Positions 2,942 to 31,725 of a stretch of DNA of 32,879 nucleotides are shown here, one piece after another (within the stretch, counting starts at the first letter, position 1; every line of letters starts with the position of its first letter). Under the pieces are notes generated by a model. It saw only the letters and a program-made list of their open reading frames with translations, searched no databases and was not told the origin of the DNA. Position numbers and translations under genes: made by a program. The DNA is from Octopus bimaculoides. Taxonomy: Eukaryota. The stretch covers positions 97,375 to 130,253 of the forward strand of contig NC_069004.1 of assembly GCF_001194135.2 (NCBI RefSeq). The letters run 5' to 3'.

Positions 2942-4874
2942 TCCTGCAGTGCAATATATTATTGCACTGCTTTCATTCAGAGGAATGCGGCCATGCGGTG
3001 TCATTGCCTCAAGGGTTTTCTCAGTCGGTCGTATACTTGTGAGGCGGGGGTAGACCTTGAGGTGTATACATACACACAGACAGACATACACACATACATA
3101 CAGACAGACAGACATACATATCTAATTGAAAATATTATCTACGTATAAAAGTGTCACAACAGGATTCTTGGATTGGAATGTCGGGGCGCCAGAAGATTCA
3201 ATTGTTCATACTCGTTTGAACCTAGATCCATCCCCTATTCTGGCTCTTCCACCACCTCCACAAACACTTATCTTCCTTAAATTAGATACATCTCTCTTTC
3301 TCTCTCTCTCTCCCTTTCTCTCCCCGGGATGATTTTACCGTCGTCATCTGACAATTTGACGTCTAACTACTAGAATAGCTGGTTATATTGCTCTCCACTA
3401 CATCTCACACAACTGTGACAATGATTAGCTACTTATATATATATATATGAAAATTCATCTAGTGGAATAATAACTTTAGGTGACATTTATGAGGGCATAT
3501 ATTTGTGGTGGGTGTATATTCATGCGCAGGCAGACTGTATATATANNNNNNNNNNNNNNNNNNNNNNNNNNNNNNNNNNNNNNNNNNNNNNNNNNNNNNN
3601 NNNNNNNNNNNNNNNNNNNNNNNNNNNNNNNNNNNNNNNNNNNNNNNNNNNNNNNNNNNNNNNNNNNNNNNNNNNNNNNATTAGTTTATGTATATATTAA
3701 TATTATCTCAGTTTAAAAAACCCAGGACGTAAATATGTTAATAGTTACCATGGGTAGCAAAAATTACACAAAAAAAAAAACAGGATATCACACCCGTTTT
3801 ATAGGTAGAGATACCAAGTTGAAGTGATGTATTTTGAGTAGATATGAATAATGACAATAAATGGAGCAAAACGCATATAAACAAAAGTTCCTTTAATTCC
3901 TACATATGTTTCAAAATATATGTGCACTCTACTCCAAAGAAGTAAGAGATGCTGGAATTGCACATATATGTAGTCCTACATATCGATTACATTTCTATTG
4001 TTCGCTTTGCGTATTAAATAAAAGATTTTGAAAATTAAAGGTGTCTATTTACTTCCTCCATGTCTGTGTATGTGCATGTATGTTATGTATGCATATATGT
4101 ATGTTATGTATGTATGTATGTGTGTATGTATGTATGTAGTGCACTTCAAATGGTAAAGTTGTTCTTGACGGGATTTGAACTCACAATAAAACTAAAAACT
4201 CTCTTTCTTTCTCTTTCTCTCTCTCTCTCTCATTTAGTATGAAAGTCTTAAAATTCCAGTTCTCTCTCTTACCGAGAGCAAATACATTCTCATATTCAGA
4301 AGCAAGGAATAAAAATTATTTTCATGATGTAATAATATACATTATTATTATTATTATTATTAATATTATTATTATTATTATTGTTGTTGTGTCTATAGTA
4401 GAAAGGATTGTTATTGTTGTCGTTGCTCGCTTTTGTTTTCTTATTTTTCTTTTCAAAAGTAATTTATGAATATATGACAGGATGTGCAGAAACGCATGAA
4501 AACGCATGGAAGAGTCACTGGTTGTAAAATTTAGAAATAATTTATCGATTCCATAGCTTTCTTGCAATACTAGACACATTGCTAATCAACTTAATGCGGT
4601 TCGATCGGTTTTTTTCTCCAATGAGGGGTAATTTACAGTCAGCACTTTTGTCGATGTGGTTTGGTGGTCCGTGACAACGATAAAGACTCAATTATTCTCT
4701 CGTGGTTATCCTACAGCCACGAACAATTCTATGATAACAGCAACAGCAGCGGCCATGATGAATTATTTGTGTTTGGAGGATTCATTTAGCTCGTTGCATA
4801 AAAATATTTCTGAAGAGTCACACACAATATCTTTAATTAGGGGAATATCTTTCTCTTAATTGTTGTTATTATTA

Positions 4875-5055
4875 TTTATCATCATCATCATCATCATCAT
4901 CGTCATTGTCATGATCATCACCATCATGAAGATTATGATTATCATCACCCACCATCGTCGTCGTTATCGTCTTCATCATGTTCATGATCATTATCATCGT
5001 CGTTGTAAGCGACATCATCATCATCATCATCATTATTAGTTATTATTATTATTGT
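4875..5055. repeat. Degenerate (CAT/CGT)n-(ATT)n microsatellite at the LINE 3' tail
   Basis: Direct reading. Confidence 0.9.
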
Positions 5056-5372
5056 TGAGTAGTTTTATTTTTATGACGTGCTTTCACTTCACTACCGAGC
5101 GCAGCTCTGTGTGCCTTGGGTATGTGCTGTGGTTTGCTGTGATGCTCTTATGGTTACTGTATTGAAAGTGTTTTGCGTAGGATGTGTGCAGTGCCCAGTA
5201 GTGCAATTTTCTGTATCTTATATATATTTGTAAGTCCTGGTGTTTTTGTTATGTATTTGTCTGAATATTTTTTTATTATACCTAAGGCGCCTACTATGAT
5301 AGGAATTGTTTCTGTTTTTAGATTCTACATTCGAGTTACCTCTATTTCCAGGTCTTTGTATTTTGAAAGTTT
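5040..5372 (-). mobile_element. 5'-truncated 3' end of an R4/Dong-clade (REL endonuclease) LINE with 3' UTR and (AAT)n tail
   Basis: Minus frame 5372-5154 reads KLSKYKDLEIEVTRM*NLKTETIPIIVGALGIIKKYSDKYITKTPGLTNIYKIQKIALLGTAHILRKTLSIQ*, the typical K..KY.DL.IE...MW...IPIIVGALG REL C-terminus, with one TGG>TAG stop. Confidence 0.85.
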
Positions 5373-5781: not shown

Positions 5782-6038
5782 GTGGCTGTGGTAAGAAGCT
5801 TGCTTCCCAACCGCATGGTTCCGGATTCAATCCCATTGCGTGGCACTTTTCGCAAGTGCCTTGTACTGTGGGCTGACCAAAGCCTTGTGAGTGAATTTTC
5901 TAGACGAAAACTGAAAGAAGCCCGTCGTATATATCTATGTGTGTGTATGTCTGAGTGTGTGTCTTTATGTCTGCGTGTCTTTATGTCTGTTTTTGTCCGC
6001 CACCACCGCTTGACAGCCGGTGCTGGTGTGTTTACGTA
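5782..6038 (+). mobile_element. tRNA-derived SINE, family 1 (3'-truncated)
   Basis: gtggctgtggtaagaagcttgcttcccaacc...ggttccggattcaatccc...gaaagaagcccgtcgtat + (GT)n. Confidence 0.85.
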
Positions 6039-6269
6039 GCTTTTGCACGAAATGTGTCAAATATGTCGTAAATATGCAACTTTTCTAAAGCATTAGAAAC
6101 TTTGTAAGATCATGTCTATCCATGGGTAGATATAGAAATATTTTGCAAGTTTTGCATTTATATATATATGATCAACGTTTGTGAAATTAGGCAGCGCATT
6201 GATTCTGGAAAATTACATAATGTGGAATAACGAGCAAATCATCTTCAGTACTTCCTATTTTATTATTAC

Positions 6270-6321
6270 TATTACTATTATTATTATTATTATTATTAGT
6301 AGTAGTAGTAGTAGTAGTAGC

Positions 6322-6378
<57 letters not shown>
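6270..6378. repeat. Compound (ATT)n-(AGT)n microsatellite
   Basis: Direct reading. Confidence 0.95.
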
Positions 6379-6379
<1 letters not shown>

Positions 6380-7938
6380 TTGAAATCGATCAGAAAGTTT
6401 CGCTCGATTTCGATTCTGTAAAATTACGAAATGCTTTCAAAGTTTTCACTAGAATTGGAATGTGTTTATGTTTTGTCATTTATATAGAAGCTCGCTTTCG
6501 TTTTCTGCCTTTTACTTATATTTTGCCCGCATCAGAGGCGAAGTGTCAGTTCTTAAATTTTTGTTTTGTAAATTGTCTGGTTTTACTAAAAAGAAAAAAA
6601 AATAGACGTTTGCGAAAAAAAATAATAATAATATTCACTAGTTCAGAAATGTAAGACGGATGGAGTAAAAAAAAAAGTGTTTAAATGAAAAAGGCAAGTG
6701 ATGGAGCGATGCTTACGTCAAACAATTGGTAACCACGGTAACAAGAGACGATGTCAGAGAAGAAAACATGCCCGTGTCGTCTGCTTGTGATTTGGAAGGG
6801 AGAAAAAAATCAACAACAATAACAACGACGACAGAGATGACGGTGACACCAACAACAATAACAAACACGACAACATCAGCAACAACAAGAAAAAGAATAA
6901 CAACGAAAGGAGAAGGAAAATTTCGTTTGCTTTGATAATCAGCAGCAGAGATTCGATCGCAAAGAAGGATTATGTTAGAAACTGTAAATGTGACATTGCA
7001 GACTGGGGATTGATGAAACTCTCAACCACTGACATACGAAGTACCCTTAGAATATGATTTTAATTTTAAAAAAACCCATTGTCAATAAGTGCATAAACAG
7101 AAAAGAAAGAATACAGCAGAATCCCAGCCGAGCCCAAGGAGAAAATGCCTGCAGGAAGCGTGGTCTTCGAGTAAGATATGTAACAAGCGGGAGGCAGTTG
7201 TTACTGTTTGCAAGAGGAAGTCGGGCCTGTCGAATGAGCTTATCATCATCCCATTATACCAACGAAGGGAGACAAAATACAGGTTAGCAACGTGTTACCT
7301 CACAGAGACCAAACCAGAGAAGTGCCAATGGTGGAGGGGCAGAGAGAGAGAGAGAGAGAGAGAAAAGAAATGAAGTCCATTTTCCAACAAAATAAAACAA
7401 ATATGACTCTGGAGCTGCAGGTGTTGGTGGCACCTAGAGACTTATTCTGGATCTCGTTCAAAACGGGGGCACCAGTATTTTCTTAACGAAACACTTTGAA
7501 ACTTGGGACACTGGTAGAATGTGTCATATAAAACATCTTTTTCTCTTAGTCTTCTTAAGAAAAATTATTATATTGCAATTTATTTCATGTTAAAGTTGTC
7601 GTATTTCTGTAATTTCAACCAATGACTGACGTCCATTCAGCCGAATACATTAAGTGCTGACTACGTAAACAAACGATTCTGGCGGTGATAAAATTATTAT
7701 TTCCTTGTCAAAAAATGGCTGAAGCATATTGGCAGTAGCTAATAAACCTTTCTATTTTAGGCACAAGGCCTGGTTTTTGAGGGAAGGAGCAAGTCAATTA
7801 TGGTTAGGGTTAGGGAAAACGAACACACGTGTGTTGCCTCTCTGCAAAATGTCAGAAGTAATGGAGATTAAATACGCTTTACACCGCTTAAACTGCCAAA
7901 GGAGTAACTGTAAACAATCATCATCGTCATCGTCATCG

Positions 7939-7977
<39 letters not shown>

Positions 7978-7991
7978 ACAACAACAACAAC

Positions 7992-8180
7992 AAAGGTGGC
8001 GAACTGGCAGAATCGTTAGCACGCCGGGCGAAATGCTTAGCGCTATTTCGTCTGCCGCTACGTCCTGGGTTCAAATTCCGCCGCGGTCGGCTTTGCCTTT
8101 CATCACTGGGGTCGATGTAATCAACTTAGCCCATCCCCGCAAATTTCAGGTCCTGTGCCTAAAGTAGGAAGGATTACTAT
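7992..8180 (+). mobile_element. tRNA-derived SINE, family 2
   Basis: Head aaggtggcgaactggcagaatcgttagc, B-box-like gggttcaaattcc, core gctttgcctttcatc...ggggtcgat, end tgtgcctaaag + (ATT)-like tail. Confidence 0.8.
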
Positions 8181-8690
8181 TAATATTGACAACAAAACCA
8201 CCCACAATCGTTATAACCGTCGGCGGAAAGAACAGCAGCAACAAGAGTAAAACACTGCGATGATGTTGATGATGATGATGATGATGTTGGTGGGGGAATT
8301 GTTGTAGGTCGAGGTGTGAATGGAAGAACAGAAGACTCTATGTGAATGTCTGTTGTCGTGAGCGGTAGATATCGAAAACGAGGCCCGTGTGCACCAGGTG
8401 ACCGCTGCTCTTCTTCAAAATGAATACCCAAGCTTGCAGTTAAAAAGACTGTTTTCTTTAAGACTTGCACATTTTCTTGATGTTTTCTTCTTCGTGCGAG
8501 TAAACAAGGAGTTAAGAGACTAAGAGATTAAGGAAGTTCCCATTCGACATTCTACAATCAGCAAATGCTTCCATAGAGATTCGTGGCGCCCATTTTGTAT
8601 CTTGTAAATGCGAAAATAAAACAAGAACAACATATTTTTTTCTGTGAGGAAGAAAGCAATAAAGAAATGAATAAATGTCTTAAGATATAT

Positions 8691-8763: not shown

Positions 8764-9799
8764 TGTGCATTTTTAGTATATCTAGAAAAATAAAATAAAT
8801 TGAGAACGAGATAAGTAAAACGATATGAAAAAATATTATTTTGTTGACACGAGTTTCAAATGAAGGAATGTTTGTGCGCGTTTCTTTAAGAAATGCTGAA
8901 CAAATGAAATAAATCTTTGGAAAAAGATGAGTTGTTTTCTTTCGTTTTATTCTTTCTGCTATTATTACGTTTTCGTTCTTGTTTTTGTGTTCTGTGGTTT
9001 TACACAGTCACACACATATGCATACACACACACACACACATACATATATGTGCATGCATGTAGGTGTGTGTGTTTGTATGTTTGTGTGCTGCACATTTCC
9101 GAGACGTTGATAGAAAAAGCTAGAAGACGTCTGAGACAAAGGTTGGTGGAATCGGAATGGCAGACAACAATAAACGACAGTTGATGGATTGAATAGAACG
9201 ACAAGTTAAAAGAGTTGGTGACTTACAAACTCGGTGCAGCTAAACTTCGCTCAGAAATACGAAAACATTTTCTTTGTCTGAGCCATTGATTGGGCTCAGC
9301 TGTTCGTTGTTGTTGTTGCTGCTGTTCTGGTTGTTTTTGATGATGGTGGTGGTTGTGGTGGTAAAGAGAGTATGATATGTTGACAACGACGGCGACGGCA
9401 TCGGGGACGGTGATAAAGTCGTCTGCTGCGGCAATGGCGGTAGAGGCATCGGTGGCAGCAGCTCTTTCTCTCTCCCCCCTCTCTCACTCTCTCTTTCTCT
9501 CTCTCTGCGCCTCCTTCATTTGTTCGGCAGTGGTAGTGATGATGGTGGTGGCGATGGCGGAGACAAAGTCAAAAATTATTGTTGATTAGATCCTGATCAA
9601 ACGTAATCGAACAGACCAACAGACATTTGATACAAGATATTCCAACCATGACCTCTCCGTCTTTTCCCAAAATATTGGGAACTTAGGACCGCATTATTTA
9701 ATCTATCTTTGTGAGGATTTGAGGAGGATTGAGCTGCTATATCTAGTAGGAGAAATTTGTTAGTGATCGCTCTATCAATCAGGCTACCAGACGTCCTTT

Positions 9800-10060: not shown

Positions 10061-11039
10061 GCTTCCTCAACCAAGCCTGTCCTGGGGCTAAACTAGGAGG
10101 ACAACAACAACAACAACCAGTAGTTCTGCATCGAAACTTCTGTTTCAAATTATAGCAAAACGTTTTAAAAGAAAATGTTTTTGTCTGATAAGTCGGGTTT
10201 TGTAAACAAAAAACTCAGCAAAAACCCTACTGACAGATGACGCAACACGACTTAGCCACACACCCACCCCGTCGCCACCACCACCACTACCTCCTCCACC
10301 ATCACTAACATCACCACCAACTCAATCACCGCCACCACCACAACACACCAAAGAAATTCTAATTCAAAATGTTGTAAAATGAAAATACTTAAAGAGTCGA
10401 AGAAAAAAGAAAATTCTTTCTCCATTTCTTGCTTTTTTTACTACAATTTGAAACATTTATTTTTTAAATGTTTTTTTTTTTTTTTCTTCAAAAACTCGTT
10501 GTTGAAAGAAGCAAAACAAGGAATCTTGAAACGTCTTGTTGGTGGATATAAGAACATTTGCTAAATAAACAATCGTCAACGAGAAAACCTTTATGTGCTT
10601 GCTCATCTTGCTAGAAATAGCAACCAAATCACAAATAAATCACATTCTACCACACATATCAAATAATATCAATAATATAGTCTTACATTCGTTATGTAAT
10701 GAAAGGATAATCAAGATATCTGGTTTTTTTTTCATGTTTTTTTTTTCAATTTGATATCTCTTCTGAGTACTTTCATTGAACCTTCAATTCTTCTTTCCCA
10801 CCTCGGTTTTATCTTCAAAAGTTAGCTTATGGTCCATTTGGTTTACTCTGGCTATCATGAGGGTATAAGGTCTAATTTTATCAGCAATACCAAGGCTATT
10901 CACAGCTAAGTCCATCGGAGTTAGTCTTATCCATGATAGGGACAACAGATGGATGTAGTTGCGAATTAATAGATGATAGTCTTTTATGCCAACGTCGTCA
11001 TGAATTTCCGGTTCTATCCTAGTGAACTTGAAGACCAGA

Positions 11040-11388
11040 CGTTTAAGTTGTTTCAGTGATTAGACTGTAGCCATGCTGGAGCACCACCTTGAATTTTAAT
11101 CGAACGAATTGACCCTAGTCCTTATTTTTTTTAAGCCTTGTATTTTAATCTATGGGTCTCTTTTTCCGATCCACTAGGTTACAGGGGCCTATACATACCA
11201 ACACCAGTTGCCAAGCGGCCGTGGGGAATACACACACACACATATACGATGGGCTTCTTTCGGTTTCCATCTGCCAAATCCACTTACAAGGCTGTAGTCA
11301 GCCCGAGGCTATAGTAGTAGAAGACAAAGGTGCCACACAGTGGAACTGAACCTGGAACCACATGGTTGGGAAACAAACTTCTTACCAT
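11040..11388 (-). mobile_element. tRNA-derived SINE, family 1
   Basis: Collinear with the 2520-2941 copy (tgtttcagt...gccatgctggagcacc...gggcttctttcggtttcc...ggaaccacatggttggg). Confidence 0.85.
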
Positions 11389-12045: not shown

Positions 12046-14149
12046 GAACTGCACGCAGGAATGCTCTCTGCTAAAAACTTGTCTGTGATAAGAGACCAAA
12101 TCTGTTAATCGTAGTCAGAAAACCTACGAAATTAAGATTTCCCTTATTACTTCCCAGATCATACGAGAGACACACCACTTTTGGACTGACCCCAACAATG
12201 GACCTCAAACTAAAAAGAGACAAGCAAACAAAATAAATAACAAAAATCAAAAACAAAAGTTTCTTTCAGAAAAAAAAAATTTAATAAATTAAAAAAATTA
12301 AAAACAACAACAGAATAAATTAGTAAAGAAAGAGAAAGTACCATCAATAAGTTAAAACTAGCTTGAAAAGAAACAAAAAACTTTTAAAAAGACATTTCTT
12401 AATAAAAAAAAAAGAATNNNNNNNNNNNNNNNNNNNNNNNNNNNNNNNNNNNNNNNNNNNNNNNNNNNNNNNNNNNNNNNNNNNNNNNNNNNNNNNNNNN
12501 NNNNNNNNNNNNNNNNNNNNNNNNNNNNNNNNNNNNNAAAAAAAAAAAACGAAATTAAGGTGAAAATAAAATAAATTCAACAATAAAAAGTTCAGATATG
12601 GAAAAATTTTCTGTAAAATATGAAACTTTCAGCATTGATGGAAGATTTCCTGAAATCTTTTTACTTTTTGTTAATTTTTAATTTACATATTTCTTATTTA
12701 TTTAATTTTTTTTTTTTTAAACATTTGCTGTTGCTGTTATTTTAGCTGCTCACTCTTCACCACCACCACCCACATACACACATCCAGATCAGCCCTGAGA
12801 TTAAGTAAATCCTATAATCAAACAAGTTCCATCCATGATCTTCCCACCTTCCATTCTGACACAGCATACTTAGTCCTACCTTAGCCAATGCAACTTTAAA
12901 CACGATAATCTCTAATATGATGATTTGGCTACTATTTCTAGCAAGCTGAGGTTCCCTCACTTGGTTTCTCATTAACTATCCTACCTACTTACGTCTCGTC
13001 CTCCAGATGCTGGAACTGAACACTTGAATTTCAGTTTCCAAGCTTATACCTGACAAGGCTAAAAACCTTTAACACTTTTGAAACCCATCCGAGGCCACCC
13101 TTGGTGCGATGGCACAAACTTCCTGCTTTAAAGTCTCTTAAAACCTTCCATCAAAACTGCATGTCAACAGTTGAAGCTAGGAAAGTTACAAAGTATCGAT
13201 GACAATTCAAAACCAACAAGAGCCGGGAGAGGAAGGTGGCCTTCTGCCAGGGAAACCTGCTTGCGGATGAGAGAATGCCATGAAAAATGAGGAAGAGGTT
13301 GAGAGAGCCCGGAGTGTAGGGATCCAACTGAATTTGTTGGAGAAGAGAGAGAGAGACTGAATGGTCATGACTGGAACGCCTTTGATAACAACAGGAGCCT
13401 TCTAGATCAAAGCTGTATTGAAACCACAATGAGCTGATCCAACAACTAAACACATCTTCCTGATCCAACTGATTCTACAATATAAAACCTGAATCCCTTT
13501 TGTTAAAATCCAATCCCAATATCTGGAGAGGAACGAGAGTGGGGTTGCAAAAGAAGGTTGCAGTGGTGTTTAACCCAGGTCAACCTTATCCATGACCATG
13601 CTGTCTTTTTGCTTTGGGTTGTCAGATAAATTCGTTAGTTCTTTAGTAGTTTCCCTTTCCATTTCTTTTAAAATCCTTTCCAATTTTATTTGAATTAGCA
13701 TCAAACATTTTTATTGTAGTGTTTTAAGGCTGTTTTTGTTTTTTGTTTGTATTTTGTTTTTTGTAGCTCAATTCTTCCTTCACAACTTTTGTACATCTTT
13801 GTTGAGATCTGAAGAATTTTTACCTCTTTTCAGAAAAAAAGAATGTTGGAACGCCACGGAGAAAAACACAAAAACAAAAAACGAAAGAATGAATTTATTT
13901 GACAACCCAATTATGCCACAGACTACATAATCTAATATGCCTTTCTTTTCTTTTCTTTGAAGAAGGCAGTGTGTGAGCATAAGATTTGACTGCTATTTCT
14001 AGTAAGTCAAACAGTGACCACATTGAGGCTCTCATGCTGGTCACCAAACTCCTTTGATTCAAATATTTCATAATTAGTTCTGCTAATGAGAGAGGAAAAG
14101 CAAATTAGCAGTCATGAGATTAACCCCTATTTGCAGCAAGGAAAGAGAT

Positions 14150-14508
14150 AATGTCATAGCAACAAGGATTCAGAAATAAACTCCTAATGATAACAGCAAC
14201 AGTAAAATGGGAAGAGTACTCATGGCAACAGAGACTACAAGGAAGCACTGCCATAAGTAGTAATAGTAACAGCAATGAAGAAGTTGTCATAGCAACAGTG
14301 ACGGTTTGTCACCCTAGCAACAATGATGGTGATGTTGTCATGACAACAGCATTGATGGGATTGCTGTGACAACAGAGAGAATGACAGCAAAAGTGATAAG
14401 TCACTATTAATGTTAGTGTTGGCATGACAACAGAAGTGATGGCAGTCGTTATAGTAACAGAGGTAGTAACATGGCCATGACAACAAGTGGTAGAATAACT
14501 ATGGCAAC
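14150..14508. repeat. Degenerate ~26-bp-period array of palindromic 14-mers (consensus near GTTGTCATRRCAAC, RFX X-box-like)
   Basis: 14-mers start at 14150, 14216, 14257, 14283, 14308, 14334, 14360, 14418, 14445, 14471, 14495. Five match RTHNYYWTRRNRAC exactly and six with one mismatch; 14334-14347 GTTGTCATGACAAC is a perfect palindrome. Confidence 0.75.
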
Positions 14509-15020
14509 AAAGAGAGAGGTAATGATGATGATGTTATTGTTGTTATTGATAAAGTGTTAGTATACATAAGAGCAGAGATGATGGAATGGATAATGAGAGA
14601 GAGAGAGAGGGAGAGAGAGAGGGAGAGAGGGAGAGAGAGAGAGAGAGAGAGAGAGATGAAACTGTTGTTAGGGTTACCGTATTTTCTGGCAGACAAGTCA
14701 GCGCCGTACATATTGTGTAGAAATGAAGCGTAACCATTCAATCCTCTTCACAATCTTTCCAAATCCTGCTGCAAGATTTCACATGGAATTTTTGGTCCTC
14801 CAGAGTCATCTTAATGTATAAATTGACCTGCCTTTTTCCTGGTTGTAAATTTTGGTCAGAAAACTTCGATTTGTTTGCCAGAAAATACAGCATCCATTGA
14901 CAATAATATTGTCAGAACAGAATCAATGAAATAACAACTGAAGCAGAAATTAAAAAAAAAAAAAAAAGAGTTATGTGTAAGAGTTTTCAGAAACTCTCAG
15001 AATATTCTGGTGAGGATTCT

Positions 15021-15278
15021 TCAGTCAGGCAATTTGTTGTAAAGCAAGAAGTCTGTGAGATTGTGCCACTGGGTGCAGTCTTCATAAAGGTAAGTCATGG
15101 AGGAACGCAGTGACGGCTGCAAGAAGTCACGCTCATATTCAAACAGCAACAAGGCGACACCCCAAACAAGGGAGAAAAAGAGGGGAAACGGTTTCTGAAA
15201 CGGCTGCGGGATGTATTGTTTCTTCACAGCAATCTGGGCCAGGGCATAGGTGATTCTTGACAGCAAGTAGAGGTTTAT
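15021..15278 (-). CDS. PXMP4: PXMP4 coding exon 4 (258 nt, INLYLLSR...YNKLPD stop)
   Basis: Acceptor ctctctctcttttccag, phase 0, TGA stop at 15023-15021. Contains LQPSLRSSMTYLYED. Confidence 0.97.
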   Translation of the reverse strand: MNLYLLSRITYALAQIAVKKQYIPQPFQKPFPLFFSLVWGVALLLFEYERDFLQPSLRSSMTYLYEDCTQWHNLTDFLLYNKLPD

Positions 15279-16405: not shown

Positions 16406-16604
16406 TTGTTCATTGACCTTGTTGTATCTGCCGAACACACAATACCCTGCTATTACACTGGCGCAAAAAATATGAGAAGGTTTCTTCTTTTTGCCAAACC
16501 ATTCAAAAATTTGCAGAATGACTTTGTGGATGACATTGAAGAGGGCTAAGCTTTTTGCATGGGTGTATGTTGCTTCCAGGATTCCACGGAACTTTTCAGT
16601 AAGT
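16406..16604 (-). CDS. PXMP4: PXMP4 coding exon 3 (199 nt, LTEKFRGILEATYTHAKSLALF...FGRYNKVNEQ)
   Basis: Acceptor cttttgtacag, donor caa|gtaagc. Lies inside track ORF 16367..16621. Confidence 0.96.
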
Positions 16605-18147: not shown

Positions 18148-18255
18148 TCTGACTGCAAATTCCNNNNNNNNNNNNNNNNNNNNNNNNNNNNNNNNNNNNN
18201 NNNNNNNNNNNNNNNNNNNNNNNNNNNNNNNNNNNNNNNNNNNNNNNNNNNNNNC

Positions 18256-18808: not shown

Positions 18809-18871
18809 GTGCCAGACTTAAAGAGAAATGTCATTACCAGACTGTGTGGGAAACGAACCTTGCAACCATAT
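18809..18871 (-). CDS. PXMP4: PXMP4 coding exon 2 (63 nt, YGCKVRFPHSLVMTFLFKSG + AC)
   Basis: Acceptor ctgttttag, donor ac|gtaagt. Symmetric phase 2-2. Peptide matches the conserved YGxKxRxPHxLVMTFLF motif. Confidence 0.96.
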
Positions 18872-20765: not shown

Positions 20766-21279
20766 ACAACTTTTTATACAAAGTGAACCTGGGAAAAGCA
20801 CAAAGTAAAAAAGACTGCTTTGACAATTACCAGAGAATTTCCAGAAGCCTATGATGGAGGAGGTGCTTCAGGACTTCACCCCAACAACACTTCCCAACAT
20901 GGTGGGAAGAGAAGTTGGATGGATGGATAACTCATGAAGCCCCCATCTGACTACTCATCCCACTAGAAATTATCATCAACCTCTTTAAAATCACACCCTA
21001 ATGAAAAACAATAATAGCACAAAAAAAAAAAAACAATTCTTAAACACCTCAAAAACATCCCCTATGACAGACAAGCCGACCACAGCAGAACATTTGAAAA
21101 ACAGATGGAGGCCGCCAATAAACTGATATCAATCGAGTTGACAAAGTGAAAATGGTACGATAAATACCAAGATCACAAAATATTTGTCTAAAATAAATTC
21201 ATTCATTTCTAGGATGTTTAATTAATTCCAAAGAGATCAGTTCATTCTTTGGTGGTTGAGTTCGATAAAATGAAGATGG

Positions 21280-21620
21280 CACACGCGTGACTCTATGGCT
21301 CCGGGTTGTCCGACTGGGAGGCACTTTGCACAAGTGCCTTCTACTACATCCCTGGGCTGACCAAAGCCTTGTGGGTGGATTTGGTTGATGGAAACTGAAA
21401 GAAGCCCACCGTATGTGTGTGTGTGTGTCCCACACCACTGCTTCACAAATGGTGTTGGTTTGTTTATGTCCCTGTAATTTAGCGGTTCGGCATAAGAGAC
21501 AGAATAAGTATCAGACCTTAAAAATTAGATACTAGGGTCAACTCGTTCGACAAAAAAACCCCTTCAAGGCGGTGTCCCAGTATGACTACCGTCCAATGAT
21601 TGAAACAAGATAAAAACGAT
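21280..21620 (+). mobile_element. tRNA-derived SINE, family 1 (PXMP4 intron 1)
   Basis: atggctccgggttg...caagtgccttctact...gaccaaagccttgtg...ggaaactgaaagaagccc...ccaatgattgaaacaag. Confidence 0.8.
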
Positions 21621-22136: not shown

Positions 22137-22231
22137 ACAATGCCATTCCTGAAGGCTTTGATTAGCGAAAGATAAGGTTTGTATTTCTCGTTGGAAAGAA
22201 TCGCGTTGATGAGAACAAGAGCTGAAGCCAT
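22137..22231 (-). CDS. PXMP4: PXMP4 coding exon 1 (95 nt, MASALVLINAILSNEKYKPYLSLIKAFRNGI + GT)
   Basis: ATG in strong Kozak context (gacaccATGG). Donor GT|gtacgt in phase 2 is completed by the A that opens exon 2 (GTA=Val). Confidence 0.93.
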
Positions 22232-22624: not shown

Positions 22625-23164
22625 GTTCTATAATGTCACTCAGTCTGCTAGAAATAACAGCCAAAATTTCGACGCTAAACAGCGCCGTGTCGTTTTATAT
22701 AAAAAATATCGGTCAAACTAAAGAGTTTGACCCGAGTAAAAAAAAATAGGTGTAAAACNNNNNNNNNNNNNNNNNNNNNNNNNNNNNNNNNNNNNNNNNN
22801 NNNNNNNNNNNNNNNNNNNNNNNNNNNNNNNNNNNNNNNNNNNNNNNNNNNNNNNNAGGAGAGGACCCGGAAAATTCACATCGTGAATGTTCCAAATCGT
22901 CTCACCACAGCCCCTCCCCCCCCCAAAAAAATTAATAGTGTAATAGATGTACAACAACATGTAGTAAACGAATATGGAAAAAAAAGATGCGCGCTCACGA
23001 ACGGGAGTGAGGGTGAGGGAGAGGACTCGGAAAATTCACATCGTCAGACCTTGACCTTTAAACTCCAGTGTTTGACACCGGGCAACAAAAAAAAAAAAAA
23101 AATTAAGAGTATTTGTTCGTCTAGTGGTTAAGGATAGCATAGCATGGCCTCACTTTAAACTGAT

Positions 23165-23700: not shown

Positions 23701-24734
23701 ACATAGACACATGAACACCCCTTTCTGTATGACATATTGTCAGTTATACCCCATTGTATTTTGACATGTGTCAAAATGCCAACCAACTTACAGAATGGAC
23801 AGAATGCTTTTTATGTGGTACCAACACTGACATGCTTTCTACAGCTGGATGCCCTTCCAAATGCCAACCACTTTACAGCTTTACAGTGTGGAGTGGATGC
23901 TTTTGAAATGGCACAAGCACTGGTGGGGTCACCAAGTAACTCACAAAACAAAAATCCTTTGTGAAGAGGGCGTTGGAGGAGGTGGCCTTGTGCCAGGTGA
24001 GGAGAGGTTAGAGGGTGACAGAAGATAGAAACGGATGCTTTGTCATAGAGGAGATACATTGTTACCCAGTCAGAGTGAGAGAAAGAAAGGAAGAGAGAGA
24101 TTCAGAAAGTGGAAGAGAGGGAGAGAGAAACACCTCTGAGTGGGGAATAGTTCTCAAAAATAACACCCAATCCCCCCCCACACACACACACAAATTCATA
24201 TGTCCTCAGAGTCTATATATTCCAAGGTGTATTTGTAGAGAATTTCTTTAAAAAATATCCATTTTCCTGAAAGTTAAGACGAATTGAAGTAAACTCCGGT
24301 GAATTTTCCGAAATCCTCCGCTAGCCCCCACCCCACCCCGATTTTGTATATTCGGAATCTGCATGATACAACACATATTCGTAGAAAATTTCATGAAAAA
24401 AAATGTTTTTCTGTAAATTATGATCATCCAAAGTCGTGGTGATGGTGGGAGGGCAGAAATCTGAAGTTATGCCTCTTCACATAACTCTTCCCTTCACGAC
24501 GGACAAAAACTGTTATATTATCTGAATTATCACGTATATATTCACACAATCAAGAAGAGGCCATTCATTTTGTGACTCTGCTACGATGTAATTGCTTCAG
24601 TTAAAATATATTATCTGAGATATTAATGGAAACTCAATACAAGGGAGACAACTAGCCATTTTATTCAATAAAGAGTTATGCCCCTTCAACTTAAAATTAA
24701 TAGACAAGGTTGTAACGAAGAACTGCAAACAGTA

Positions 24735-25200
24735 TCATAGACTTGTGCATGGCCTGGATAGATTTTCAAAAAGCTTACGACATGTTGCCGCATTCGTGGA
24801 TTTGGGAAACACTCGACATGTGTGGAGTAGCTGAGAACGTGTGTGCACTGATTAAGAACAGCTTGGTTGGAAAATACGTCTTCTCAGTAACAACCAACAA
24901 TCAAAAGTATCATTCAGGGACGCTTTTATTCACATTTGTTATAGCCTCGACCCCACTTTCTGTAGTCCAACACAAAGTCAATGGCCCTTTGAGCTGAGAA
25001 ACAATGGATCACGTCTCAACCACCTTCTCTTCATGGATGATCTAAAACTGTTGGCAAAAACAGAGCCTGAAATGGAGAGGCTGGTTGAGACTGTGCAGAA
25101 GTGAAGCAAGGATATTGGGATGGAATTTGATAACTCGAAGTGTGTGGTGCTTACTTTGAAGTGGGGGGAAAAGAGTAAATTCTAGGGACATAGAATTGGC
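24735..25200 (+). mobile_element. Decayed non-LTR reverse transcriptase fragment (R4/Dong-like)
   Basis: MAWIDFQKAYDMLPHSWIWETLDMCGV (RT domain 3), then RLNHLLFMDDLKLLAKTEPEMERLVETVQK*SKDIGMEFDNSKC (catalytic xMDD), with deletions and a stop. Confidence 0.85.
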
Positions 25201-25504: not shown

Positions 25505-26690
25505 ATTAGGCACAAGGCCACAAGTCTGGGGTAAGGGACCTGTAAAGTTGATTGTATCAACACCAGCATTTGACTGGAGTTTATATACTGACCCCGAAAA
25601 AGATTAAATGCATACTTGACCCCAGTTCAAATATCACCAGGCTCAACATTGCTCTTCATCCTTTCGGGGCAGATGAAATAAGGGGTCAAGTACTTGGGTA
25701 AATTTAACAATAATCATGAATTTTTTTTTTTTTTTTTCACATAGGCACAAGGGCAGAACTTTCACAGAAGGGGTTAATCAATGAAACCGACCCCCCAATA
25801 CTTGACAGGTATTTTGACCCCTGAAGGATGATAAACAGAGTTGTCCTTGGTAGGATTTGAAATTAGAATGTCAAAGAACAAAAAAAATAATAACCTCCAC
25901 CCCACCCCCGGGCTTTTTGTCCAGCGTTTGGCCAACTCTGCCTCTCCACCAATAAAAACCTTTTTATATTTGACTTGTTTCAGTCACTCAACTGTGGCCA
26001 TGCTGGAGCACTGCTTTGAAGAGTTTTAGACAAACGAATTGACCCGATTACTTTCCCCTTTTAAGCCTGATTCTTATTCTATCGACCAATTTTACTAAAC
26101 CACTAAGCCATGGGGATGTAAATAAACCAACACTGGTTATCAAACTGTTGTAGGGACAAACACAGACACACACACACATGTACATACACACATACATATA
26201 TATATATACACATATATACATACACACATATAGATATACATATATACATACAAACATATATACGACGGGCTTCTTTCAGTTTCTGTCTACCAAATTCACT
26301 CGCAAGGCTTTGGTCGGCCTTGTGCTATAGTAGAAGACACTTGCCCAGTGGGACTGAACTTGGAACCATGTGGTTGGGAAGCAAACTTTTTACCACACAG
26401 CCACACCAAGGTCAGAAATTTAATTTAGAAGGGGTCAGTCAATACCATTGACCCTATCATTTAACTGATGCTCAATTTTATTGACCCCTAAATGGTGGAA
26501 AAGCAAAGTTGACTTCAGCAGGTTTTGAAATTGATGATAATGATTTCTTATTTAGGCACAAGGCCAGCAATTTCAAGGGGAGCAGGGTTATCAATACAAC
26601 AGACCCTGTTATATGAGTGGTACTTAATTTTATTGACCCTAAAAAGAAGAATGGTCAGCCTTGGGGTGGGGTTTTGACTCCAGTCATAAT
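25505..26690 (-). mobile_element. Cluster of about four SINE family 2 copies or fragments (25505-25625, 25742-25950, 26406-26525, 26550-26690) around a family 1 copy
   Basis: Recurrent plus-strand text aggcacaagg...ttgaccc...tggtactta...ttgaccc...aaagttgac, the reverse complement of the 7992-8180 element. Confidence 0.7.
25965..26405 (-). mobile_element. tRNA-derived SINE, family 1, near full length
   Basis: Collinear with 2520-2941, including a ~105-bp internal (CA/TA)n. Confidence 0.88.
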
Positions 26691-27109
26691 AATAATTGTG
26701 TCTTGAATTTTTTTTCTTTTCTTTGTTGAAGTTTATTTAGCAGAAAGTTAATGAAATTCTATAAAATCTATCTTTTTTCTTCTTAGGAATTGGGAGAACG
26801 TTGGTCAAGCGATGAGAGTTCATATCTGAACACTCTCATACAGCTCAGTCCACTTGGTTGAAAACAGGTACCACATATTAAGAATCATTCCACACTCTAA
26901 CCAACATCATCAGCAGCATGATAAATACAATGGGTGTTTTGTTAGCTTCCTCCTCCCCCGTGATTGACACCACTAACTACTACTATTACTACTACTATAA
27001 TCATCAACTATACCATTAACATCATTACCTCCACCAGTAACCAAGGCAACTACCACCACCACCACCACCACAGTTACTACTACCAACTTCTACATTTGTT
27101 GTTGGTGTA

Positions 27110-27535
27110 TAGCCCCGAGTTAAACTTGATTGAACAGACCTGTGATCAAAGGCATTCCTTCCATGACCACCTCTATCTTTTCTATGGCTACATTATCTAT
27201 GTCTTTCCCTTCTCTTTTAAGACAATCGGTTATGTGATTTGAGACAAATGTGACTTCTATTTCTAGCATGCCAAAAGTCCGCATACTTGCACCTTTGTTG
27301 GTGAGTCCAGTCGTTGTTAGTGGTGGTGGTGGTGGTGGTGGAGGTAATGGCGATATTGTTTAACCCCAGGTCAGCCCTGATCTAGCAGACATATTTGATC
27401 AAAGGCATCGCAACCATGACTGTCCCATCCTTCTCATGAGCATTGTGTTTCTAGGAAAACATTATTCAGTGTGTTCCTAACTTTTAAACATAGTAGAATG
27501 TAATTTGAGGGTGATTTGGCTGTTAATTCTAGCAT
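27110..27535. repeat. Two copies of an unclassified interspersed repeat (family 3); other copies near 9585-9750, 12780-12945, 13340-13415 (inverted), 13570-13610 and 15570-15645
   Basis: Shared motifs ttaaccccaggtcagccctgat...tgatcaaaggcattcc.accatgacc and gatttg.ctgctatttctagca. Confidence 0.6.
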
Positions 27536-28315: not shown

Positions 28316-29767
28316 TATAATAACAATAATAATAATAATGAATTCTCCAATTACTATGAAGTTCTGAGATCATATTTGAACCTGAGTTAAAACCTACAAA
28401 GGACTGGTGTCCTATCCCAGAGGGGAAGCAATATATCTCTACCACTTCATTCCACTAAAAATACAAAAAAAAATTTTTTTTAGTATTCTGACATACCATA
28501 ACCCCTTCTTCCTGAATAAATAGACTGACCCCTATCATAAAAGGGGAAGGTATAAAGCTTAAGAATTACTTGCCTCACCCTCACACTCTTTTTCTTTATT
28601 TTTTTCTCCTCTTTCTTTTCACTTTGTATTAAGCCTTTCTTTTAAATTTTTTGGGGTCTTCTTTCCTCTTCCCCTTATTTCTTTCTTTTTGTCCCCTCTC
28701 CTTTTTTTTCTTTCATTCCTTTTATATCACCACCTCCCACCAATACTCCTTTTCCTGTTACTTGATCATTAAATTTGGAAAGAACTCTCAACAAATTGTT
28801 ATCCCCAAATGCCATCTGTTTCACTTTCATTCTTGTTCTTAACTCTGTGTGTGTATGTTGCATTCTTCCAGAGCATCAAACTAATACACTTGCTTATGGT
28901 TCCTTTACCTGTTTCTGTCTTTTGTTTTCTATACATTTGAACCATATATGTATGGACGTGTGTGTGTGTATACACACACACATATATATATATATANNNN
29001 NNNNNNNNNNNNNNNNNNNNNNNNNNNNNNNNNNNNNNNNNNNNNNNNNNNNNNNNNNNNNNNNNNNNNNNNNNNNNNNNNNNNNNNNNNNNNNNNNNNN
29101 NNNNNNNNNNNNNNNNNNNNNNNNNNNNNNNNNNNNNNNNNNNNNNNNNNNNNNNNNNNNNNNNNNNNNNNNNNNNNNNNNNNNNNNNNNNNNNNNNNNN
29201 NNNNNNNNNNNNNNNNNNNNNNNNNNNNNNNNNNNNNNNNNNNNNNNNNNNNNNNNNNNNNNNNNNNNNNNNNNNNNNNNNNNNNNNNNNNNNNNNNNNN
29301 NNNNNNNNNNNNNNNNNNNNNNNNNNNNNNNNNNNNNNNNNNNNNNATATATATATTAATTGTTGCAAGTAGGCTGCAGGAAAGTACCTCGGAGAAGATG
29401 AATTCTATACAAACACTGCACTCTCCCACATGTGTGATATTGTCAGTTGAAAATAACAATCACTAACTTCGATTATCTGTGCAGTTTGTAGACAAAAGCT
29501 CCCTCTACACAATGTTCAAAATCTAAAAAGAACAAATAAGAGACACAAATGTAGTAAAATCACTTCGTTGAAATTCTTGGAAAATATATAAAATGCAGTA
29601 TGGCAAGGGTAAGGGTGAATCAGATCTGTAAGCCAACTGGTGGAGGCAACAGACATGTTTCAGTCTTGTTCAACCTCCTCAGCAAGGAATATTTTATTTT
29701 CAGTTGGCAACACTAAAAGTGATCAATATATATACACATACACACACAGGTGCATGTGTGTGTACAT

Positions 29768-30864: not shown

Positions 30865-31170
30865 AGGTACAAGCCCTGATTTTTCCCTTTCTTTAAGGAG
30901 AGGCTCCTAGATTTTTTCAGGTTGAAAGCCATTCTGCACTAGACCCCATCAGCTGGTCCAGTTGGTGGAGAAGATTCCAGATTTCTGACTCCTTTGATGC
31001 AAGGATAGTAGTGTCATCCATGGAGGCTTTCAGGGCTGTCATCTTGCATCCACCACCAAGGTCTGCTGCACTTGTTTTGTTTTCTACTGCCCTGAGAAGT
31101 ACCTGCATCATCAGCACCATGAAGAGTATTGGTGACCCTGCACAACCCATCGCAATTCCAACCTCCATCC
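30865..31170 (-). mobile_element. Decayed non-LTR reverse transcriptase fragment (REL-type, Hero/NeSL-like) in the last intron of the CRAL-TRIO gene
   Basis: EVGIAMGCAGSPILF...LKASMDDTTIL (RT domains 4-5), then after a frameshift CRMAFNLKKSRSLSLKKGKI. Clade assignment is from recalled motifs. Confidence 0.8.
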
Positions 31171-31269
31171 CAGCTCAGGCAGTTGTGTCTCTGTTGGTGA
31201 TAAAAGGAATTGGAAATTGAAATAGGAATGTGACATCGCAAAACAACAACATTACCTTTTGTTATTACG

Positions 31270-31725
31270 AAAGGCACAAGCAGTGAAATTTGGGGGGAAG
31301 GGACAAGTTGATTTCAGCAAGTCCAGGGCATAACTAGTCCTCATTTCATCAACTCTGAAATGATGAAAGGCAAACTCAACTTAAGCGGGATTTGAACTTA
31401 AAACATAAAGTGAGATTTTGTCTGGCACGCTAACGATTCTGCCATCTCGCTGCCTTAATAGTAGTAATGATGATGATGATAACAATAATGATGAAGATGA
31501 TGATGATAATTCTTTCTACTGTAGGCACAAAGTCCAAAGTTTTGTAGGCGTGGTCCTGTCAACTACATCGACCCCAGTACTCAGCTGGTACTTATTTCAT
31601 CAACCCTGAAAGGATGAAAGGCAAAGTTGACCTTAATGGCATTTGAACTCAGAACATAAAGAGCTGGAAGAAATGCTTCTAAGCATTTCATTCAACATGC
31701 TAACGCTTCTGCCAGCTCACAAGCT
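31270..31725 (-). mobile_element. Two tandem SINE family 2 copies (31270-31458, 31520-31725) in the last CRAL-TRIO intron
   Basis: aggcacaa...gatgaaaggcaaa...atttgaact...gctaacgattctgcca, twice. Confidence 0.8.

Follow-up and report, generated by a model that had tools for sequence, protein, structure and literature searches.

A degenerate 26-bp tandem array of X-box-like units downstream of a PXMP4-like gene in Octopus bimaculoides

X-boxes, minisatellites and simple-sequence tracts

The units of the array described here resemble the RFX/DAF-19 X-box, a 14-bp imperfect inverted repeat of the form GTTNYY-AT-RRNAAC (PMC3245922; PMC2375033). Of 31 validated nematode X-boxes in one table, 29 lie between 60 and 285 bp upstream of the ATG; some genes carry two or three X-boxes, and a distal site can there modulate expression (PMC3245922). 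The strongest of these validated sites typically pair CC at positions 5 and 6 with GG at positions 9 and 10 (PMC3245922). In the fly, the palindromic X-boxes are those enriched at real targets; having an X-box reportedly does not by itself predict RFX control, and the loosest consensus gives about 50,000 hits in the fly genome (PMC2375033). The octopus array is unlike validated X-boxes in that it holds 11 tandem copies located 3' of a stop codon, and is not promoter-proximal, whereas validated sites occur singly or as two to three per gene and lie upstream. Its left half-sites are also poorly conserved, and its host gene is peroxisomal and not ciliary.

In layout, the locus resembles a minisatellite of the VNTR type (unit of 10 to 100 bp) in a 3' flank or UTR, as its head-to-tail copies of about 26 bp vary slightly in length and show a higher-order period, and it adjoins microsatellites in non-coding sequence. 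Unlike the minisatellites that are usually annotated, it is far more diverged (49 to 61% matches, with Tandem Repeats Finder, TRF, silent at its defaults) and has a triplet periodicity as well. Copy-number polymorphism is the defining trait of a VNTR. In the human TERT repeat MNS16A, copy number sets the number of GATA-1 sites, and the octopus array would be alike in this respect only if RFX binds it; promoter activity and polymorphism were measured for MNS16A (PMC5438627), while the octopus array, described here from its sequence, is old and degenerate and not young.

The array is also like cryptically simple or compound imperfect trinucleotide tracts, with strong autocorrelation at lags 3, 6 and 12. 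Its 5-mer vocabulary, which consists of GAT, GGT, GTT, CAA and CAG words, is common to about ten other tracts in the window (the whole 32,879-bp stretch of O. bimaculoides DNA that was analysed), and it abuts (GAT)n(GTT)n. Unlike those tracts, the array has an additional period of 26 bp, a length not divisible by three, and its GTT-type and AAC-type words alternate regularly, which creates the palindromes. Literature searches on tandem-repeat or cephalopod RFX arrays, and on octopus minisatellites, brought up nothing relevant; the "tandem repeats" of a DAF-19M preprint are synthetic constructs.

Layout of the array and its gene context

The nearby gene is PXMP4-like and lies on the minus strand. 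Its last coding exon spans 15021 to 15278 with the stop codon at 15021-15023, and the full model has GT-AG introns and encodes 204 amino acids, with a Pfam Tim17/Pmp24 match at 33 bits against a cut-off of 32.7. When the last-exon peptide was searched against a protein collection, the best match had 63% identity and no cephalopod PXMP4 was found; a look-up of the 108-aa open reading frame over the same exon returned no record. The preliminary description correctly placed the array 0.5 kb downstream of the PXMP4 stop: in transcript sense it occupies the interval from 501 to 871 nt past the stop codon, and it is 7.6 kb from the ATG. On the strand of the gene, there is no canonical AATAAA between the stop codon and the array, and the first one after the stop is at 13894-13899 (minus strand, 1127 nt 3' of the stop), followed by others at 13710 and 13685. 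A canonical 3' end would therefore put the array in the UTR, and judging from these poly(A) signals the array is probably inside the 3' UTR of the PXMP4-like gene. No coding exons were recognised in the 1.6 kb further downstream, from the array to an assembly gap at 12418-12537. The array itself was considered as coding sequence, as two minus-strand frames are free of stops for 74 to 87 codons, but these are of low complexity and have no Pfam match, and the coding reading was rejected.

The whole degenerate tandem array was delimited at 14134-14520 on the plus strand, to which the positions of all repeat units below refer, by lenient TRF, autocorrelation and a repeat finder. It is made up of about 14 unit slots of 24 to 29 bp each, all in direct orientation, with a recognisable core in 11. 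All eleven 14-mers reported earlier, from 14150 to 14508, are at their given positions to the letter, and so the start-to-start distances of 66, 41, 26, 25, 26, 26, 58, 27, 26 and 24 hold. Block A (14257-14385) contains five contiguous units that start at 14257, 14283, 14308, 14334 and 14360, with spacings of 26, 25, 26 and 26. Block B (14418-14520) contains four, starting at 14418, 14445, 14471 and 14495 with spacings of 27, 26 and 24. The 58-bp gap between the blocks holds one or more decayed units (14375-14417); the core is best preserved there in GAGAGAATGACAGC at 14375, after which comes spacer-like AAAAGTGATAA. Decayed units are present in the 66-bp gap too, for example CTCCTAATGATAAC at 14181, so the 11 units are the recognisable survivors of about 14 slots. 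Directly adjoining the array is a triplet run, (GAT)4(GTT/ATT)n, at 14521-14555, which was found as repeat-finder family D6 and by lenient TRF and has the same vocabulary as the spacers. A (GA)31 microsatellite called by TRF also flanks the array at 14595-14656.

The proposed periodicity of about 26 bp is real, as lag autocorrelation, the repeat finder and lenient TRF agree on it. Identity within the array is 0.38 at lag 26 and 0.42 at lag 29, against 0.28 expected. The repeat finder returned a six-copy family with spacings of 51, 26, 58 and 53, and lenient TRF called a period of 26 at 14244-14355 (61% matches) and at 14318-14485 (49%), together with a period of 67 at 14134-14302, a higher-order period at the left end. 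TRF at default settings and the lowest allowed score called no array within 14150-14520. The direct copies follow one another head to tail at a near-constant spacing of 24 to 27 bp, as repeat-finder families D2 and D3 also show, and homology spans the whole unit, spacers included, well beyond a short motif. Two non-adjacent segments, 14326-14358 and 14410-14442 (repeat-finder family D3), have 82% identity across spacer, core and spacer, which shows that whole units recently shared descent. With direct head-to-tail copies, homologous spacers and matches of 49 to 61%, an old 26-bp minisatellite, one of the readings offered in the preliminary description, fits best. The array belongs to a sequence class that is common in the window, as it sits in a triplet-periodic, low-complexity tract with about ten others like it. 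The nearest 5-mer spectra are those of triplet-rich tracts at 9301-9560, 8101-8360, 6801-7060 and 26901-27160, and the lag-3 excess of the array ranks fifth in the window.

X-box likeness and conservation of the units

The degenerate X-box pattern RTHNYYWTRRNRAC matches the array at 14216, 14283, 14334, 14445 and 14495 and has no match elsewhere in the whole window, while the strict pattern GTNRCC-NN-RGYAAC has a single match in the array, at 14308. The number of degenerate sites expected by chance had been put at 0.02 to 0.04 against 5 observed, and this estimate was right. Shuffles of the 359 bp gave expectations of 0.02 (mononucleotide), 0.01 (dinucleotide) and 0.02 (trinucleotide), rising to 0.34 when tetranucleotides were preserved, and none of the 2000 shuffles of each type reached five sites. 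The X-box excess thus survives controls of di- and trinucleotide composition, in which the counts are not similar (about 0.02 vs 5). However, since the hits are copies by descent and not independent, what the shuffle P-values demonstrate is a repeat, and they are silent on selection.

The units were also scored with a weight matrix made from the 30 validated C. elegans X-boxes of PMC3245922 (Table 1); in leave-one-out calibration, the validated sites have a median of 17.7 bits and a 10th percentile of 15.3. Four of the 11 units score between 16.1 and 17.9 bits. These are GTACTCATGGCAAC at 14216-14229 (16.1 bits), GTTGTCATAGCAAC at 14283-14296 (17.9 bits, 5/7 palindromic pairs), GTTGTCATGACAAC at 14334-14347 (17.9 bits, a perfect palindrome) and GTTGGCATGACAAC at 14418-14431 (16.8 bits, 6/7 pairs). 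Four intermediate cores score 11.8 to 14.3 bits: GTCACCCTAGCAAC at 14308-14321 (13.9 bits, the one match to the strict pattern) and, in the group at 14445-14508, GTCGTTATAGTAAC from 14445 (11.8 bits), ATGGCCATGACAAC from 14471 (12.4 bits) and ATAACTATGGCAAC from 14495 (14.3 bits). The remaining three, AATGTCATAGCAAC at 14150-14163 (8.4 bits) and the cores starting at 14257 (5.8 bits) and 14360 (8.4 bits), fall below 9. By sequence, five units fit the X-box under RTHNYYWTRRNRAC and eight under the matrix (four at 16 to 18 and four at 12 to 14 bits), while three fail. The window has eight sites that reach 12 bits; seven of them fall inside the array, and the other, at 27037, is in a triplet-rich tract. 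The core at 14334, GTTGTCATGACAAC, is also the consensus core of the array, and both it and GTTGGCATGACAAC differ by a single mismatch from GTTGCCATGACAAC, the validated site of xbx-2/xbx-4. An objection that right halves reading GACAAC are unlike RFX sites was dropped, as validated nematode X-boxes end in ATGACAAC (xbx-2, xbx-4, xbx-5, bbs-9, nph-4 and tub-1; PMC3245922). In simulation, the probability that a 26-bp unit drawn at random contains a site of at least 16 bits is only about 1e-4, so the likeness to RFX sites is non-trivial unless the hundreds of other known motifs are allowed for.

Conservation within the array does not follow the palindrome. Eleven palindromes had been listed; the core at 14334 is indeed perfect (7/7), but only this one and those at 14418 (6/7) and 14283 (5/7) are good, and the mean is 4.1 of 7 pairs. 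The spacers had been described as differing from each other. They are in fact homologous, with an A(G)..T-GATGG-like core in common and small indels, and in the unit alignment spacer column G22 is invariant and G25 has an identity of 0.78. Column identity is 0.79 in the centre of the palindrome, 0.75 in the right half, 0.50 in the left half and 0.48 in the spacers. The higher conservation that had been ascribed to the palindrome relative to its spacers is consequently confined to the centre and right half, as the left half-site is on a par with the spacers. The block that is conserved, ATRRYAACAR, extends two bases beyond the X-box; in an equal-rates simulation, its higher conservation relative to the rest has a nominal P of 0.003 to 0.011, a contrast that is inflated by AAC anchoring and spacer indels. 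T2, T8 and AAC are invariant across the nine contiguous units, with T2 altered in one of the 11 overall. Variation in the cores amounts to 31 transition cells vs 9 transversion cells.

As the 11 units were chosen by their AAC ending, the neutral simulations kept the AAC anchor fixed to allow for this. X-box-compatible units (5 by pattern, 7 of at least 12 bits, 4 of at least 16 bits) are two to three times as numerous as the neutral mean. Under a star model, in which units decay independently, the observed counts were reached in only 1 to 7% of simulations. When the units are instead related by a tree, they were reached in 10 to 28% of neutral runs, with 5 or more pattern matches in 15 to 28% and 7 or more sites that reach 12 bits in 11 to 23%. 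Preferential retention of the palindromic core, as had been suggested, is not established, given that the right half only is better kept, that the units were AAC-picked and that the tree model produces the observed counts this often.

Origin and possible functions of the array

It is possible, though unlikely, that the array is a working homotypic RFX cluster, which as an enhancer, silencer or "sink" would bind dimers on adjacent units, separated by about 2.5 helical turns, with PXMP4 or a neighbouring gene as its target. Such a cluster would account for four units that score near the validated nematode median and four more behind them, for the concentration of the window's stronger sites in the array, for the single mismatch that separates GTTGTCATGACAAC and GTTGGCATGACAAC from the xbx-2/xbx-4 site, and for the constancy of the critical T2, T8 and AAC positions in the nine contiguous units. 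Retention above the neutral mean (star-model P of 0.01 to 0.07) and the known genes with several X-boxes, where a distal site can modulate expression (PMC3245922), point the same way. The tree-model runs weaken the argument from retention, however, and an X-box by itself is not predictive of RFX control (PMC2375033). The cluster would also be situated 0.5 to 0.9 kb past the stop codon of a gene for a peroxisomal membrane protein, 7.6 kb from the ATG, and no unit combines CC at positions 5-6 with GG at 9-10. RFX binding leaves the two conserved bases past the X-box (AACA-R) unexplained. Inverted half-sites with at least 5 of 7 complementary pairs are present in only 3 of the 11 cores, and the left half-site is conserved no better than the spacers. 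Poor left halves are compatible with RFX binding, as one half-site is known to be enough in some cases. All of the X-box-like sites derive from one ancestral unit and count as one event, not eleven. Judged from the sequence, a selectively maintained platform, either a homotypic RFX platform of about eight usable X-boxes spaced by 26 bp (a distal enhancer or silencer, or an RFX-titrating buffer) or a dsRNA module in the 3' UTR, would be quite improbable; such an RFX platform keeps what probability it has because X-box-compatible retention exceeds the neutral mean.

Alternatively, the array may act as RNA, with its units pairing within the PXMP4 3' UTR into a long imperfect duplex for A-to-I editing or for a dsRNA-binding regulator. 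We regard this as very unlikely. The stop-to-array interval without a canonical poly(A) signal is consistent with it, and the transcript strand of 14257-14520 has a predicted folding energy of -55.8 kcal/mol, compared with -45.0 +/- 4.3 in shuffled sequences (z = -2.5, with 3 of 200 shuffles folding as well), through nested pairing between units; the arms 14333-14348 and 14417-14432 (pair I2) are 94% complementary over 16 nt. Yet the non-transcribed strand is at least as stable (z = -2.9), the extra stability being an automatic consequence of repeating a quasi-palindrome, and no near-perfect helix exceeds 16 bp, a short length for a substrate of editing enzymes. The stacked RNA hairpins envisaged earlier do not appear: the predicted fold pairs different units and has no local hairpins, with a stability that is only modestly above that of shuffles and no better on the transcript strand than on the opposite one, and the 14-mers cannot form such hairpins because a two-base loop is sterically impossible. 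An Rfam search gave no match at threshold; a hit to a snoRNA model at 14123-14213 on the minus strand (E = 0.18, 26.5 bits vs a gathering score of 50) was taken as chance. An origin as the internal tandem repeat or tail of a transposable element (a MITE, a Helitron or the 3' end of a SINE or LINE), and hence as a copy of a dispersed family, is improbable too. Inverted arms are present nearby (14672-14699 with 14868-14895, and 13614-13652 with 13872-13910), as are an A16 run preceded by ATTAAA at 14949-14967 and the (GA)31 tract, a SINE-like family has at least 5 copies in the window, and perfect X-boxes are carried on repeated elements of other genomes (loci L047, L022 and L082, and L064 and L031). 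Within the 32.9-kb window, however, there is no second copy of the array or of its 2.5 kb of flanks, as BLAST searches of the window with the array and with 12540-15020 gave trivial short matches only, and neither terminal repeats nor target-site duplications surround the array.

The explanation that we favour, at a probability of roughly two in three, is that the RFX-like string is an old, heavily diverged minisatellite of about 26 bp whose X-box likeness was copied from one ancestral unit, with no dedicated function needed. The unit consensus is close to GTTGTCATGACAAC-AGCAGTGATGGT. The minisatellite probably originated within a triplet-periodic, cryptically simple tract, a class common in the window, where a GTT-type word would have met its own reverse complement, an AAC-type word, to give a quasi-palindrome. 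This segment would then have been amplified by slippage or unequal exchange. The ancestral unit would have resembled an RFX X-box by chance, every copy would have inherited the likeness, and since decay was mostly by transitions, which the R/Y-coded X-box consensus tolerates, many units would still "match". Very similar cores are found in short tandem arrays on unrelated metagenome contigs (L038, 30 bp x 3.5; L054, 15 bp x 2.6), so X-box-like tandem arrays seem to arise repeatedly. A metagenome scan with two adjacent units returned at least 120 loci with a single match each, and none of those listed looks like a relative of the octopus locus. As bare DNA, and given open chromatin, about four of the units would be plausible RFX binding sites.

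The array is mainly a cautionary case, as a tandem repeat multiplies whatever its founding unit resembled. An R/Y-coded consensus survives transition-biased decay, and shuffle P-values therefore hugely overstate the "enrichment" of factor sites inside repeats. Regulation in cephalopods is believed to bear the mark of repeat expansion and long 3' UTRs. If RFX were to bind the array, it would stand out among X-box clusters as tandem, distal and located 3' of a gene that is not ciliary, and use by RFX or as dsRNA would give a tandem X-box array a regulatory role without prior description. RFX binding would be of moderate interest for the fields of RFX biology and cephalopod genome evolution, as the array would then be a minisatellite that supplies regulatory sites in a cephalopod genome.

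X-box likeness of the array

The array comprises eleven 14-mers between 14150 and 14508, named here by their start coordinates, that resemble the X-box, the 14-bp motif bound by RFX/DAF-19. All eleven lie exactly where the preliminary description, a model's reading of the sequence alone, had placed them, and its spacings are therefore exact. The degenerate X-box pattern RTHNYYWTRRNRAC matches units 14216, 14283, 14334, 14445 and 14495 and nothing in the rest of the 32,879-bp window; the strict form GTNRCC-NN-RGYAAC matches once in the array (14308) and twice elsewhere in the window. When the 359 bp were shuffled with mono-, di-, tri- or tetranucleotide counts kept (2000 shuffles per level), 0.02, 0.01, 0.02 and 0.34 degenerate-pattern sites were expected, respectively, and no shuffle at any level reached five. 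The cluster is therefore not a by-product of local composition. Trinucleotide-preserving shuffles, by which the preliminary description had proposed that it be judged, leave it standing, and its observation is both accurate and far beyond what composition would provide.

The weight matrix used for scoring derives from the 14-base X-boxes validated in C. elegans that Chu et al. 2012 list in their Table 1 (30 sites; PMC3245922). Scored with each left out in turn, these sites have a median of 17.7 bits, and 15.3 bits marks their 10th percentile. Among the array units, 14283 and 14334 (both 17.9 bits), 14418 (16.8) and 14216 (16.1) are followed by 14495 (14.3), 14308 (13.9), 14471 (12.4) and 14445 (11.8), and then by 14150 and 14360 (both 8.4) and 14257 (5.8). 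By this measure, about four units bear a real likeness to X-boxes and four others a fair one. The idea that GACAAC right halves disqualify several units was dropped; the validated X-boxes of xbx-2, xbx-4, xbx-5 and tub-1 end in ATGACAAC (PMC3245922). Eight sites in the window reach 12 bits, and the array accounts for seven of them. The one outside it equals the number, about one per 33 kb, that a second-order Markov model of the window leads one to expect.

Repeat structure and decay of the units

All units share the same direct orientation. A repeat finder recovers six 34-nt copies in the array (62-74% identity; spacings 133, 51, 26, 58 and 53), and 14326-14358 is 82% identical to 14410-14442 across spacer, core and spacer. 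The suggestion of a 26-bp minisatellite is supported by these homologous direct units and by a period of 26, with 61% matches at 14244-14355 and 49% at 14318-14485, although recovering this periodicity requires lenient Tandem Repeats Finder parameters and the default ones, at the lowest score, call no repeat at the array. The 66- and 41-bp intervals between units are explained by a higher-order period of 67 bp that the lenient parameters detect at 14134-14302. Decayed units lie inside the 58-bp interval (GAGAGAATGACAGC at 14375) and inside the 66-bp interval. The array is triplet-periodic as well as 26-periodic: against an expected 0.28, its autocorrelation shows peaks of 0.40 (lag 3), 0.37 (lag 6), 0.35 (lag 12), 0.38 (lag 26) and 0.42 (lag 29). 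Its X-box-like hits are copies of one site and not independent events, which makes significance computed for 11 sites illusory.

How well the cores have been kept can be read from a gapped alignment of nine contiguous units, in which gap placement favours the spacers. Mean column identity is 0.79 at the central AT and 0.75 in the right half-site, but 0.50 in the left half-site against 0.48 in the spacers, so that the claim of a palindrome better kept than its spacers holds for the center and right half only. The conserved block, ATRRYAACAR, runs two bases beyond the X-box, and a GA.GG core is retained in the spacers. Likewise, the eleven palindromes originally described reduce to three good ones (14334 with all 7 pairs complementary, 14418 with 6 and 14283 with 5), against a mean of 4.1 of 7. 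Equal-rate neutral simulations give the best 10-column block a nominal P of 0.003-0.011 against the rest, a contrast that is inflated because the AAC ending served to define the units and indels lie in the spacers. Core variation comprises 31 transition and 9 transversion cells, mostly at positions 1, 5, 6, 9, 10 and 11; the degenerate consensus is R/Y-coded at those positions and is thus blind to most of the decay.

Descent from a single core was simulated by mutating eleven copies of the array consensus core, at the observed proportion of transitions, until they had diverged as far as the real units. Uniform decay across all 14 positions leaves about 2 pattern matches versus 5 observed, and 2.4 sites of at least 12 bits versus 7. 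A second null holds the AAC anchor fixed, allowing for how the units were chosen; observed counts are then reached in 1-7% of runs under star (independent) decay tuned to the observed divergence, and in 10-28% along a coalescent tree of units. The tree is the fairer model because the units are visibly related through recent duplication. X-box compatibility is thus retained beyond the neutral mean but still inside the neutral range, which does not demonstrate selection.

Surroundings of the array

The array lies on the 3' side of a minus-strand PXMP4-like gene with coding exons at 22137-22231, 18809-18871, 16406-16604 and, last, 15021-15278. Its introns are GT-AG, and its 204-aa product scores 33 bits against Pfam Tim17/Tim22/Tim23/Pmp24 (cut-off 32.7). 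A human PXMP4 probe, serving exon location only, is 63% identical over the last exon; no cephalopod PXMP4 was found in the protein collection searched. The array occupies 501-871 nt past the stop codon in transcript sense, in agreement with the 0.5 kb first reported. No canonical AATAAA/ATTAAA is present on the gene strand between stop codon and array or inside the array, and because the first lies only beyond it, at 13894 (1127 nt downstream of the stop codon), the array is probably within the PXMP4 3' UTR. The frames that run through the array free of stops are of low complexity and gave no Pfam match, and the further 1.6 kb to the assembly gap at 12418-12537 yielded no recognisable coding exon. 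This gap, on the side of any downstream neighbour gene, is one of six N runs in the 33 kb (the others are 2185-2496, 3546-3679, 18164-18254, 22759-22856 and 28997-29346).

Arms of 39 nt at 13614-13652 and 13872-13910 (79% complementary, 219 nt apart; TTGGGTTGTCAGATAAATTCG... / ...CGAAAGAATGAATTTATTTGACAACCCAA) resemble a small MITE-like element, and since the right arm bears the first AATAAA, a transposon may supply the PXMP4 poly(A) signal. The stretch from stop codon to array contains (GA)31 along with an A16 run and a pair of 28-nt inverted repeats. The pair (14672-14699 and 14868-14895; 82% complementary, 168 nt apart) represents another MITE-like element or, alternatively, a long hairpin within the putative 3' UTR. 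The A16 run follows ATTAAA on the plus strand (14949-14967), 54-72 nt from the opposite-strand stop codon, and resembles the tail of a retroposed element that entered the putative 3' UTR in antisense orientation. The single match in an Rfam search, to the C/D-box snoRNA model RF00537 at 14123-14213 (minus), extends into the array at its left end, where decay is greatest; at 26.5 bits, far below the gathering score of 50 (E = 0.18), it was treated as chance.

In composition, the array belongs to a sequence class common in the window. Its 5-mer spectrum is nearest to the triplet-rich tracts 9301-9560, 8101-8360, 6801-7060 and 26901-27160, with which, on direct reading, it has the words GATGGTGG, GGTAGAGG, GCAGCAGC, GACAACGAC and CAACAACAA in common. 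It ranks fifth among 260-bp windows in lag-3 excess and continues directly into (GAT)4(GTT/ATT)n at 14521-14555, then (GA)31. Outside the array, the sole strong X-box-like site is GTAACCAAGGCAAC (27037-27050, 16.1 bits), within a triplet-rich tract, and the next best, GTAACCACGGTAAC at 6729-6742 (11.5 bits), is about 80 bp before one, which suggests that such sequence is prone to produce X-box look-alikes. Low-complexity tracts with a triplet period occur at unusually high density here, about ten or roughly one per 3 kb (for example 4851-5110, 6201-6460, 6801-7060, 7851-8110, 9201-9560, 10101-10360, 26851-27160 and 31451-31710), and several are without stops in many frames.

Origin of the array

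The reading we favor, with a probability of about two in three, is that of a 26-bp minisatellite, old and degenerate, which arose within a triplet-rich tract of the probable PXMP4 3' UTR and whose founder was X-box-like by chance. The palindrome would have formed at a junction of GTT-type and AAC-type words, and a 26-bp segment carrying the junction, which happened to resemble an X-box, would later have been amplified. A working RFX cluster, proposed earlier as an enhancer or sink, could draw on the units that score like validated X-boxes, but we consider it improbable, as its sites are one site copied and their left half-sites are kept no better than spacers. Its position past a stop codon also differs from that of validated nematode X-boxes, all but two of the 31 being located 60-285 bp upstream of the ATG (PMC3245922). 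In Drosophila, X-box presence alone reportedly fails to predict RFX control; the criterion that proved useful was conservation between species, and enrichment was seen for palindromic sites (PMC2375033). A double-stranded RNA role is less probable still. The transcript-sense strand of 14257-14520 folds 2.5 SD better than dinucleotide shuffles, with nested pairing between different units in place of the local stacked hairpins once suggested, but the opposite strand folds slightly better (z = -2.9), and any repeated quasi-palindrome must give such an excess, which is therefore no evidence for selected structure.

Membership of a transposable-element family is about as doubtful as RFX function, as the window holds no second copy of the array or its flanks. 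Repeats in other genomes do carry X-box-like palindromes, which has no bearing on this locus. A metagenome scan for two adjacent units matched at least 120 loci, once each, and among the matches listed, 8 loci have three sites of at least 12 bits within 400 bp. Among these, two groups of contigs (L047/L022/L082 and L064/L031), probably invertebrate host DNA, hold unrelated repeated elements with perfect GTTGCCATGGCAAC, spaced at about 70-190 bp in L047 (about 520-920), and look like a repeat family spreading RFX-type palindromes in another genome. Cores very like the array's recur in tandem on two contigs unrelated to this locus, L038 (1230-1334; 30 bp x 3.5, 82% matches, unit with GGTCGTCATAGCAACAGTG) and L054 (3525-3563; 15 bp x 2.6, CTGTTGTCATGGCAA). 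The window has dispersed repeats of its own. A SINE-like family has at least five copies of 71-81% identity (21150-21560, 5815-5944 and, on the minus strand, 11094-11360, 2573-2906 and 26246-26343), each adjoining an (AC)n/(ACAT)n microsatellite and one lying in PXMP4 intron 1. A reverse-transcriptase fragment at 30920-31174 (minus; Pfam RVT_1, 23.5 bits, below the cut-off of 29.6) and similar stop-free frames at 24619-25101 (plus), which have no Pfam match, are probably decayed retroelements.
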